Part shown: one piece after another, positions 41,618-46,092 of the stretch
Position numbering within the stretch: the stretch's first letter is position 1
Layout of the letters: every line of letters starts with the position of its first letter
Origin: Adineta vaga
Taxonomy: Eukaryota; Animalia; Rotifera
Direction: 5' to 3'
DNA: 64,000 bases
Assembly (NCBI GenBank): GCA_021613535.1
Contig: CP075492.1
Location: 11,346,001-11,410,000 of the forward strand
Notes under the pieces: model-generated
The model's database searches: none
Told to the model about the DNA's origin: nothing
What the model saw: the letters and a program-made list of their open reading frames with translations, nothing else
Made by a program: the position numbers and the translations under genes

Positions 41618-42181
41618 ATGTTTGATTTCGGATATTTTGTCCGTTCATTTGTATTATTTCAGCGATTTAAAGGCAAAGTAAAAACCAAGAAATTATTCGA
41701 TGAATCAATCATTAAAGGGCGCTGTTGGACAACGGATCTTGATTTCAATTGGCATATGAATAATGCAAGATATTTACGTCAATGTGATTTTGGTCGAATT
41801 GCACTGTTAGTTGAAACAGGTTTATGGGATGCTATTATGATTAGAAGAAAAAATGGAATGAAAGATGCTGGTATTTTAGTTGGTGCATTACAAGTTCAAT
41901 ATCGTCAGAGTGTTGAATTTGGAGATCGATTTGAAATTCGAACGAAAATTAATGGATGGGATGATAAAGCTCTTTATTTAGAACAAGCTATGGTACTTGA
42001 TAAAAATAAACAAATTGCTTTTTCAATGTTAATTCGATTTGGATTAACTCCACGAACCTTTACACCACAAATGTTAGTTGATGATCTTAATATTGGACAT
42101 ATTCAATCGCCAACACTTTCGCCAGCTGTCGAAATCTTTAAACAAAACTATAGAATAGATTATCAACCAGTCAAATCATGA
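41618..42181 (+). CDS. THEM6: THEM6-like hot-dog-fold thioesterase, intronless
   Basis: GRCWTTDLDFNWHMNNARYLRQCDFGR, VQYRQS, WDDKALYLEQ. Confidence 0.9.
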   Translation: MFDFGYFVRSFVLFQRFKGKVKTKKLFDESIIKGRCWTTDLDFNWHMNNARYLRQCDFGRIALLVETGLWDAIMIRRKNGMKDAGILVGALQVQYRQSVEFGDRFEIRTKINGWDDKALYLEQAMVLDKNKQIAFSMLIRFGLTPRTFTPQMLVDDLNIGHIQSPTLSPAVEIFKQNYRIDYQPVKS

Positions 42182-42553
42182 ATTTGATTTCTTAGTTAAT
42201 AAATAATATTTTTTTAATAAAAGAAAACGTAGAACTACTAGTTACAAACTTTTTCAAATAGTTTTATTGAAATCAAGAATGTATCAAATCGCTCGCCATA
42301 GGAACTCATTTAATCTTTGACTATACAATCTATCATTTTCAACTATTCTTATAACAAAAACTGTGTGAAATAAACATAATGTGTTCACGAGCGACATCTC
42401 TTTCAACACTGTCGACTATTGGTTCATAAGAATACCCTTGTTATAGCTATTTGTTTATCTTGTTTTGTCGTTCTGTCTATCTATCTATCTATCTGTATGT
42501 GTTTTCTTACAACGTGACAGTAACAAAACTTCAATTACTGAGAAACTATTCTC

Positions 42554-43516
42554 ATGACTGAAATTTCACCACGACGCTTAGAATTTGATCGTGAAAATAC
42601 TTTCTATGAACTTTTTATTTCATCCAATGATTTATCTATAATTCAATCCAATCGAACTAATACGGTACCTTGGTTAATGGCATTTGGTCGTTATCTTAAA
42701 ACAATTCGACTCGATTCTCATCCAATGAGTACAAATCCACTTCTTTATCAATTTGTTGAAAATATTTTGAATGAAAATCATCATCATAGTACTACTCGTG
42801 AATTACTTTTAATTCTAAAACAATGTATTTATCTTTATCCAGACAAACTCATCAATCTATCGTTTCAACATCATCTAACGAAAGCTTCATTAACTTTAAC
42901 AGATCCTTATCTTAAATATAAATATGTTCGTCTTCTTCGTTTGATTATCATTGAAATAGAAGTACAATATCTTCACGAAATTCTTCCATCAACTGACCAT
43001 CTTCTTGCTAATTATCATCAACTGGACGTTTCCATTATGATTGTTTTAGAAAATCTAGTTTTAATGAATACTGATTGTCAATTACAATCTCGATTGAATC
43101 AACTTTACAATCAAACCCTTATTGATTATTTCAAAATGAATGATTTCGATGATGATGAATTAATTGATCTTTGTCAAATTCTCTTTCAAATCAATCGAAA
43201 TCAAACACTTCATTGTTTATTTACTATTCCCAATCTTTTCAATGATCTATTAATCTATATTGATTATGATACAGATACAATGATGAATTGGTTATTAACT
43301 CCTGAAACTGGAGAAAAATTTCTCATATTTCTTCTTCGATTAATGAAATATTTTACATCAAATCGTGATGAATTTAAATCTGAAATTAAGAATGAAAATT
43401 ACAATAAATTCATTCATACGATCAAACAATTTCATGAACAATTAAAAAATGCTCATGAAAAATCTTTATTTCCTTACAATATCAAACCATTATTGAATGC
43501 TTTCAATCTATTCTAG
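42554..43516 (+). CDS. Lines/LINS1-like protein (compact, intronless)
   Basis: DDDELID.., LF..LL..IDYD...[21 protein letters not shown] and terminal [10 protein letters not shown] resemble the conserved Lines blocks as recalled. Confidence 0.72.
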
Positions 43517-43518
43517 AT

Positions 43519-43908
43519 ATGGGACGTATTTTTCTAGAACATATTGGTGGACAACGAGTTTTTTCATGTGCTCATTGTGATACACCATTAACAAATCGAA
43601 ATGAATTAGTTTCAACAAGATTTACAGGTGCAACAGGTCGAGCATTTCTATTCAGTCGTGTTGTAAACACGAAACAAAATACTGTACAAGAACGAGTAAA
43701 AATTCATTTCGATGGAGATTTTTAACATCTAATTTCATTCAATTAGATGATGTTAACTGGTCGACATTTCGTTCGAGATGTAACTTGTAAGAAATGTGAT
43801 GCTAAACTTGGTTGGATGTATGAATTTGCAACCGAAGAATCACAACGTTACAAAGAAGGACGAATTATTCTTGAACGTGCATTAATTAATGAAAGTGATG
43901 GTTTTTGA
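43519..43908 (+). CDS. YPEL5: Yippee-like 5 (exons 43519-43695 and 43747-43908)
   Basis: [91 protein letters not shown]. Confidence 0.97.
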
Positions 43909-44040
43909 AAAAGAAAAACGAACATTCTTGTTTTATTTGTTATTTGTTATTTGTAGATAGCTAGAGAGAGTGAGAGCTCAGATTAAAACGTTCATTTTTA
44001 TTTATTTCAGATTGATTTTGTTTGATTAATTGGAAATGTA

Positions 44041-46092
44041 ATGGTCGGAATTCGAGATAAGTTAAAAATTGAAATTGTTGAACATAATAATGAAGTAAGA
44101 GAAGTTTTTCTTTGGAAAAAAGAGAAATTCTTTTATTTTTGAAGGTTCTTCCAATATTAATTCGTGATATTGGAATTAATTTAAAAGCAGGAGAAGATGT
44201 TGCATTAGTTAGGTTTGATAGTTATGCAGATCTTTTGGTACCAAAGAAAGTCAAAGCGGATGAAATTCAAACATTAGATCATCTCGTTGAGTATGTTATA
44301 GAAATTTAATATTGATATTTATAAACAATATGTTTTATTTTAGCGCAATTAATAATCAATGTTGGATTCTTCCAGCTGTTTATCGAGGTTATATAACAAA
44401 AATATTCTGGTTTAAACCGCCATGGGCACATCAATTTCAAGATGGAAAATATCAATTGCAAGTTGGGAAGTGTCAAGAAACTGGAGTTTTGAAGTAAGTT
44501 AATTCTCAAACATTCATATGTACTTTATATTATTTGAGACTGATAAGAATGAATAGAATACGAATTTCTAATGGTATTCTCATAGATAAAGTAAAAAATT
44601 GATTTACAAGCAGAATACATCTGTACAATAGAAGGTAATGCTTTTCGTAGGATTTGACGAGTGTGATCTAATAGTTATCAATAGATTGATTACTAGTAAT
44701 TAGTTTTCAATTAACTAATTCTAATATGGAATGGAAAATGTTAATCAAAATTTATCTTATGTTTAGAGTTGTTTCAACTAATGCATATTTTACATCCAAT
44801 TGTGTTTATTCATCGAGTGATAGACTCAAGAATATACATACAGTGGATATTTATGTATCAACAGGTGGTTTAGCAAAGAATTATGCGACAACAATTGAAA
44901 AATCTCATCCTTCAATTTATGATCATGATAGTGGAAGTGAAAGTCTTGATGCTGATAATCTGAAAAAAGACAAATCATCTGTAAATGATCTTAATCATAA
45001 AAATGATCCAACAAAACAACGCGTTTATCCTCTTGATGCAACATTAATCGATCAATTACTTGAAACAAGACAATTTCTAATTGATGTCGATCTTTCTTTT
45101 TTCTCCACCGATGATTATATACGAAAACAATTTGATGAAAATGAATATGAAATTCTTCGTTATGTTTATACACGTATCGTACATGATCATTCAGATATGG
45201 AAATTCAACGTTATATAACAGCACGCGAAAATGCATTAGAACAAATTCGTACATTGATGAATGAATATGTCATTGGTCCAAAATCAGATCAACCGATCAT
45301 TATCGAGTAAAATCATCCTTTGTTTTTTTTCTTTATGAAAAGAATGTTGTATTTTTTTTCTCTTCTATTGTAGAAATCCATATCTTTCGGCATTGATTGC
45401 GATTATTCGTCATAAGAAATTAGATTGGCAAGCAGTTCATAATTATGGAATGCATTTATCAGATACAAGACCACCATTACATGTTTCTTCGGAAGAAATG
45501 GTTATTTATTTAACAGAAGCTATGGCAAAAATTTTACAATCGATTAAAAAAGATCCAATTCTAATTACAATTTCAAGGTAAAAAAATATGAATTTCTAAC
45601 TTATTGATTATACAATATAATAATGATGTAATGATTATCTTTAGATGTGTTGATGATGGTCATTGTTCATTAGAACAAGCTGATCTAATTCAACAATATG
45701 TCGAGAAGAAACTTCATATTTTATATAAAATTGATGAAACAATTGGAAAAAGTTTATTAAGAAATAATGAATACGAAGAAGAAGAGCCGAAAGATCGACG
45801 ATCTATGCTTATCTCTGATGATGAAAATAGTCCTTCGCCACCCAATGGTTTGCCCAATCGAGCACCACTTAGTGGTGATAGACCTCTTGCTACCGATATC
45901 ACCAATTCCAGCAAACATCTTGCCTTAAAAAAAGATGTTGATATTGATTTATCGCCACCATCGAATACAAATAATAGACTTTCACCGTCGCCATCTGTTC
46001 CATCACCTTCGAAAGAACATCTATCGCCAGGAGAAATTATTAAAACAATGTCACCATCATCACTTTCGGAAGGATCTCCTATATTAGATTAA
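44041..46092 (+). CDS. UPF0489 (C5orf22-like) protein with degenerate motifs and a Ser/Pro-rich tail, multi-exon
   Basis: IVEHNNEVLP, RFDSYADLLVP, WILPAVYRGY..WFKPPWAHQFQDG, FLIDVDLSFFS, ITISRCVDDGHC. Confidence 0.8.

Follow-up and report, generated by a model that had tools for sequence, protein, structure and literature searches.

A Lines-like gene and the gene for YPEL5 in the Adineta vaga genome share one conserved unit without a gap between them, and the conservation of their junction supports the view that the AG of the Lines stop codon acts as a selected splice acceptor. On balance we favor the reading that the two genes form a spliced-leader operon without a gap, comparable to those of Ciona or to the SL1 type of C. 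elegans, with this AG as the putative trans-splice acceptor of YPEL5. Our judgment is evenly divided on the fuller claim: that the Lines stop is the YPEL5 spliced-leader acceptor, that Lines has no 3' UTR of its own, that each precursor is processed in an either/or manner in Adineta, Rotaria and other lineages down to 51% identity, and that rotifers have a class of gapless operons to which the locus belongs.

The Lines-like gene and YPEL5

The window (the whole 64,000-nt stretch of DNA that was analysed) lies on contig 3 of the 100.8 Mb, six-contig A. vaga genome and has a G+C content of about 30%. Table 1 lists the features of the locus. A preliminary description of the window had reported an intronless 320-codon ORF that ends in TAG (43514-43516), with AT and then the start codon of YPEL5 (43519) right behind it, and each of these coordinates is correct; the two ORFs are out of frame as it said (965 mod 3 = 2), and the GTATGT that it pointed out as a donor candidate upstream of the Lines ATG is present. 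Its remark that the TAG sits in an acceptor-like pyrimidine context also holds: the context is ctttcaatctattcTAG, with 12 pyrimidines in 15 positions, which falls in the range of five RNA-confirmed acceptors nearby (10-13 of 15). A sequence scan found no poly(A) signal within 40 nt upstream of 43517.

Table 1. Features of the Lines-YPEL5 locus (positions are those of the window)
Feature	Positions	Strand	Basis or remark
Putative promoter and 5' UTR of the Lines-like gene	42239-42553	+	Promoter predicted; includes (TCTA)n repeat
Candidate cis donor GTATGT	42495-42500	+	Letters present; no junction listed from 42495 in four runs
Lines-like ORF, intronless, 320 codons and TAG stop	42554-43516	+	ORF list, LINES_C homology, RNA contigs, dN/dS
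Proposed 3' splice (spliced-leader) acceptor, pyrimidine-rich last codons and TAG	43500-43516	+	Acceptor use proposed
AG of the proposed acceptor	43515-43516	+	Inside the Lines TAG stop (43514-43516)
Two-base spacer AT, stop to start	43517-43518	+	Read from the sequence
YPEL5 exon 1, 59 codons, ATG at 43519	43519-43695	+	Junction 43695 to 43747 in four runs; homology
YPEL5 intron, 51 nt, GT..AG	43696-43746	+	Spliced out in RNA contigs of four runs
YPEL5 exon 2, 53 codons and TGA stop	43747-43908	+	Pfam Yippee-Mis18 match; RNA contigs
YPEL5 3' UTR, ATTAAA at 43982-43987	43909-44010	+	Ends in pyrimidine tract and AG at 44009-44010

The neighborhood includes an upstream thioesterase-like gene (4HBT_2; 41618-42238) that has AATAAA signals and whose poly(A) end is at 42238, and a (TCTA)n microsatellite (42464-42508) in the presumed promoter/5' UTR of the Lines-like gene, which was masked in read mapping. 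The gene order of thioesterase, Lines, YPEL5, a gene of the PF12640 family and an opposite-strand OPT gene is also found in A. ricciae (L008).

The upstream ORF is, by its sequence matches, a short and divergent Lines-like protein, since LINES_C is found in its homologues, its family profile matches Lines proteins, and it is the sole such gene in the genome. The window ORF itself scores 22.4 bits against Pfam LINES_C (below the 27-bit cut-off). An exact search for its protein in assemblies returned no record. Its 36 homologues, which share 47-73% identity with it, come from Adineta, Rotaria, metagenome and Logan sequences; all 26 of the 26 aligned bdelloid homologues match LINES_C (best E 4.5e-07), and one of the 26 matches LINES_N (E 0.001). 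When the family profile was searched against 1.8 billion representative proteins, it found proteins of 500-825 aa in which the C-terminal ~100 residues align; LINES_N is present in 8/8 and LINES_C in 7/8 of the eight profile-matched proteins that were scanned, and the last ~100 positions of the profile align, in true Lines proteins, to LINES_C together with the end of LINES_N (E 4e-8 to 1e-3). The bdelloid protein has 320 aa, as compared to 600-825 aa for true Lines proteins. According to the genome search, the gene is single copy in A. vaga, and neither a second Lines copy nor any LINES_N match was found in that genome.

Synonymous divergence (dS) of the Lines-like ORF between lineages runs from 0.6 to saturation, and pairwise dN/dS among ten lineages is 0.09-0.30, so the ORF is clearly under purifying selection. 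The preliminary description had made its reading depend on such selection, and it is present.

Over its full length, the YPEL5 protein shares 76-80% identity with annotated YPEL5 from many animals, and its exon 2 matches Yippee-Mis18 (PF03226) with 30.6 bits, above the 26.6-bit cut-off (the spliced protein sequence is the stored database protein P0001:272-383). Its 51-nt intron is absent from the contigs of four RNA runs from four studies.

The stop-to-start junction across bdelloids

Genomic and transcript loci that carry the junction were fetched by homology. The junction from the Lines stop to the YPEL5 start has TAG in 9/9 linked lineages, including A. ricciae and Rotaria magnacalcarata, and the spacer is 0, 2 or 3 nt long. 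It reads TAG, AT and ATG in the window, in L008 (A. ricciae), L009 (Rotaria magnacalcarata), L010, L018 and L022/L023 (a G+C-richer lineage with 51% protein identity); TAG directly followed by ATG in L011 and L016; and TAG, ATC and ATG in L012/L013. The preliminary description had suggested looking for conservation of TAG-NN-ATG in related rotifers, and of this pattern the TAG is invariant while the spacer takes the three lengths above. Since the same stop-to-start junction is found in nine diverged lineages, the arrangement is more than chance. A fusion of the two proteins by frameshift or readthrough was also considered and rejected, since the varying spacer length means that the frame relation of the two ORFs is not conserved.

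Besides the TAG, the last 15 Lines coding bases contain 9-12 pyrimidines in all nine linked lineages. As controls, YPEL5 at these loci stops with TGA in 7, TAA in 4 and TAG in 2 cases, and 22% of open frames of at least 80 codons in 264 kb of the A. vaga genome end in TAG. TAG in 9/9 would arise by chance with a probability of about 1e-6 if the lineages were independent, a figure that is a rough guide as the lineages share ancestry. The most divergent Lines copy (L021, 412-1450; 47% identity) has no YPEL5 behind it, and its stop is TAA; 17 nt past this TAA lies the acceptor-like ttattttcAG of a PF12640-family gene. YPEL5 may have been deleted there, or L021 may be the other ohnologue.

It is the combination of TAG in 9/9 linked lineages, TAA in the unlinked copy and a YPEL5 stop that varies freely that makes the AG of the Lines stop look like a selected splice acceptor. 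No role other than splicing would account for the fixed TAG, the pyrimidine-rich last codons and the TAA where YPEL5 is missing, and the invariant TAG points to RNA processing rather than a translational mechanism at the junction.

RNA contigs and competing explanations

The A. vaga RNA data consist of assembled contigs of four runs (X1, X5, X6 and X18) from four studies; spliced junctions are found in all four runs, so the data represent RNA. The Lines ORF is covered by contigs in all four, with pieces of it in X1 and X6, a contig spanning 42552-43517 in X5, and a contig in X18 that aligns at 42509-43349 and has 20 further letters in the masked repeat, which put its start at ~42489. The X18 contig thus probably starts at or just upstream of the GTATGT donor, and is unspliced. 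Between 42239 and ~42488 there is no RNA contig in the four runs; given this gap and the poly(A) end of the thioesterase mRNA at 42238, the transcription unit probably starts within 42239-42488.

The preliminary description had proposed one precursor for both proteins, from which the whole Lines ORF is removed either as a cis intron or as an outron. In its cis form YPEL5 would be a gene with a Lines gene nested in an intron that runs from GTATGT at 42495 to 43516. The donor-like GTATGT and the acceptor-like TAG are both there, so the letters permit such an intron; we consider it scarcely credible, as no such junction is found in the four runs while every other local intron is recovered, the X18 contig shows no splicing from 42509 onward (~42489 if its 20 masked letters are colinear), and the donor sits in a microsatellite region. 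The shared precursor itself fared better, in view of the gapless unit, the acceptor-like AG of the stop codon and the Lines-YPEL5 contigs of two other bdelloids described below; its cis-intron version did not stand.

A cis intron is also implied by published gene models in which Lines and YPEL5 are fused (I4U23_014402 of A. vaga, one protein of A. ricciae and several of Rotaria), with a donor inside the Lines CDS joined to the AG of the stop codon. Gene predictors built such models in at least five genomes, all of them with the stop-codon AG as acceptor, which speaks for a real fusion protein; the donors, however, differ by genus (for A. vaga the Lines part ends ..FTSN, for A. ricciae ..SIV and for Rotaria ..TPET), the four runs show no junction of this kind, contigs run through the A. 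vaga donor at 43366, and the fusion would remove the LINES_C motif, the most conserved part of the protein. We regard a true fusion as very improbable and the published models as probably artefacts, since predictors cannot end one gene and begin the next without a gap.

More generally, no junction into 43517 from 42495, 43365 or elsewhere was found in the four runs, in which six other local introns were recovered. The search for leader-bearing sequence at this site, which the preliminary description had also suggested, returned no leader-bearing loose end at 43515-43517 in the contigs of the four runs; contigs seldom keep a 23-nt leader. With neither an observed junction nor a conserved donor for cis-splicing, trans-splicing is the best reading of the acceptor. 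The published bdelloid spliced leader is GGCTTATTACAACTTACCAAGAG (23 nt; PMC3795323), and more than half of bdelloid transcripts carry a spliced leader (PMC1925144). By genome search, A. vaga has 42 copies of spliced-leader genes that end in CCAAGAG followed by a GT donor. These genes are located on C1, C2, C4, C5 and C6, many of them as inverted pairs ~156 nt apart (L004-L007), with clusters on contig 5 at 9.88-9.93 Mb and 10.91-10.93 Mb. Two scans of JGI contigs for a leader-YPEL5 pattern, run without a positive control, gave no true match (two matches in the wider scan were in unrelated sequence and were discarded as chance), and leader fragments in the fetched loci matched the leader genes themselves only.

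At the boundary itself, none of the A. vaga contigs listed for the four runs bridges 43517-43527, and depth arithmetic gives almost nil over 43518-43634 in X1, X5 and X18, for which allelic breaks (e.g. a branch at the 43665 variant) or the mapping filter are possible causes. The X5 contig ends exactly at 43517, which a poly(A) branch, an allelic variant or a coverage gap could each produce; as this end has no A run, it is not counted as evidence here. A loose end at 43596 in X18 was dismissed as noise (chance 18-nt identity with an unrelated C2 gene). RNA does cross the Lines-YPEL5 boundary in two other bdelloids: L016 (Logan run SRR22100215) and L018 (JGI sample 3300056981) contain the Lines ORF followed by an intron-free YPEL5, and such contigs could merge reads of precursor and of mature YPEL5 mRNA (the contigs examined from the source sample of L018 are without introns). 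The expectation in the preliminary description that Lines RNA runs on into YPEL5 agrees with the assembled contigs of these two bdelloids; none of the listed A. vaga contigs shows it.

Contigs that hold both ORFs, together with the conserved stop-to-start distance of 0 to 3 nt, are also what a truly bicistronic mRNA would give, with termination at the Lines TAG and reinitiation 0 to 3 nt further on at the YPEL5 AUG. We consider this improbable. Eukaryotic ribosomes reinitiate inefficiently after an upstream ORF as long as 320 codons unless a special element helps them; reinitiation requires no particular stop codon, yet the TAG is invariant; and most YPEL5-bearing RNA seems to be without Lines, a point that relies on contig depth and is weak.

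The depth in question is that YPEL5 contigs are about 4-6 times deeper than Lines contigs in X1, X5 and X18 (contig depth being a weak measure). The same difference fits two overlapping independent transcripts, with a YPEL5 promoter inside the Lines CDS and a Lines mRNA that reads on into YPEL5, and so does the failure to see the leader in the contigs, the JGI scans or the fetched loci. A YPEL5 ohnologue on contig 6 (L002, C6:4265726-4269126, minus strand; 83% nucleotide identity) is another point for it: this copy has no Lines upstream and the same next gene downstream, lies ~400 nt from a divergently oriented gene and is driven from this upstream region of its own (an AG is found 1 nt before its ATG, catttaaAG t ATG). 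Another YPEL5 copy, in L014, L015 and L017, has an ordinary 5' UTR without Lines and no leader in its contigs, which speaks against the operon reading. An internal promoter would leave the invariant TAG, the pyrimidine-rich end and the TAA of the unlinked copy unexplained. Moreover, synonymous-site identity in the 3' part of Lines is not raised (0.56-0.60, versus 0.58 overall), so that an extended embedded nucleotide element is not evident there from the alignments, and the lack of raised synonymous conservation over the last 300 nt argues against a conserved embedded promoter. We therefore hold an internal YPEL5 promoter to be unlikely, and return to the spliced-leader operon as the preferred reading.

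Proposed processing and comparison with known operons

Under the spliced-leader operon reading, transcription would start from a single promoter in the ~250 nt upstream of the Lines ATG, and the AG in the Lines TAG, preceded by pyrimidine-rich codons, would accept the 23-nt bdelloid leader at 43517. The predicted join of leader and YPEL5 is ...CTTACCAAGAG to ATATGGGACG, and reads across the leader acceptor are predicted to have ...ACTTACCAAGAG directly before ATATGGGACGTATT. The product would be a leader-AU-AUG YPEL5 mRNA, with the Lines part discarded as an outron, while precursors that escape trans-splicing would be the mRNA for Lines and carry YPEL5 as a trailer; any one precursor would yield Lines or YPEL5, never both. 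With the acceptor inside the stop codon, the Lines message would have no 3' UTR of its own, and the most likely template for Lines translation is the unprocessed RNA with both cistrons, extending to the poly(A) site of YPEL5 (ATTAAA at 43982).

The closest known counterparts are the operons of Ciona intestinalis (Satou et al. 2006, PMC1488885), in which cistrons are exactly juxtaposed and AATAAA is mostly absent. As in Ciona, the genes here are on the same strand and directly juxtaposed (2 nt apart in the window, 0 to 3 nt in eight other lineages), and the organism performs spliced-leader trans-splicing (42 leader genes; PMC3795323, PMC1925144). Ciona also has one leader, which serves single genes and operons alike; the boundary is marked by the acceptor AG of the downstream gene, a canonical AATAAA is often missing from the upstream cistron, and a precursor has been proposed to become the mRNA of one cistron or of the other (PMC1488885). 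The two systems differ in that the Ciona boundary follows a normal 3' UTR, whereas the Lines-YPEL5 acceptor AG lies in the upstream stop codon with no 3' UTR; an acceptor within the upstream stop codon is thus what is new as compared to Ciona-type operons. Leader-bearing cDNAs and poly(A) ends have been mapped in Ciona, whereas neither was seen for Lines-YPEL5.

In C. elegans, the SL1-type operons are a minor class without an intercistronic region (cited in PMC1488885 and PMC7986045). In these, the upstream poly(A) site adjoins the downstream trans-splice site, similar to the arrangement proposed here, and the two processing events are mutually exclusive; unlike Lines, the upstream genes have AAUAAA and a 3' UTR, and ordinary operons of C. 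elegans use a leader of their own, SL2, whereas one leader is known in bdelloids. The dicistronic mRNAs of Drosophila stoned and Adh-Adhr (see references in PMC2776167) resemble the present case in having two unrelated ORFs with a very short spacer on one RNA, but they depend on reinitiation or internal entry and need no acceptor at the boundary.

We found no characterised rotifer operon in the searchable literature. Should leader addition take place at the stop codon, the junction would be the tightest in any animal operon known to us, and the coding sequence of one gene would supply the splice signal of the next. The locus would then document operons in Rotifera, and would show cleanly, in a natural setting, how one precursor can be processed to either of two unrelated proteins. 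For annotation, public models join Lines and YPEL5 into chimeras, through introns that are probably invented, in A. vaga, A. ricciae and several Rotaria species, and trans-splicing-aware annotation would correct these and similar loci.

The unit probably extends to the PF12640-family gene downstream of YPEL5, whose ATG is at 44041 and which is preceded by an acceptor-like pyrimidine tract and AG at 44009-44010. The X18 contig of YPEL5 stops at 44011, and the contig of the next gene begins at 44009 in X1 and X18. This looks like a second operon boundary, for which the AG at 44009-44010 is the likely acceptor. Three JGI environmental contigs, L014 (1-2136), L015 (1-2002) and L017 (1-1224), carry YPEL5 and the next gene, both spliced, at a distance of 112-142 nt.

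In 264 kb of the A. vaga genome we counted nine tight stop-to-ATG junctions (3 TAG, 6 TAA), too few to speak of enrichment. One more TAG stop, at L025:3519 (C1:3003519), comes after a strong tract of pyrimidines (tttttctctctttctttttcTAG), and 5 nt further on an ATG begins a frame of 69 codons. This site may be either a further gapless junction or the acceptor of an intron.
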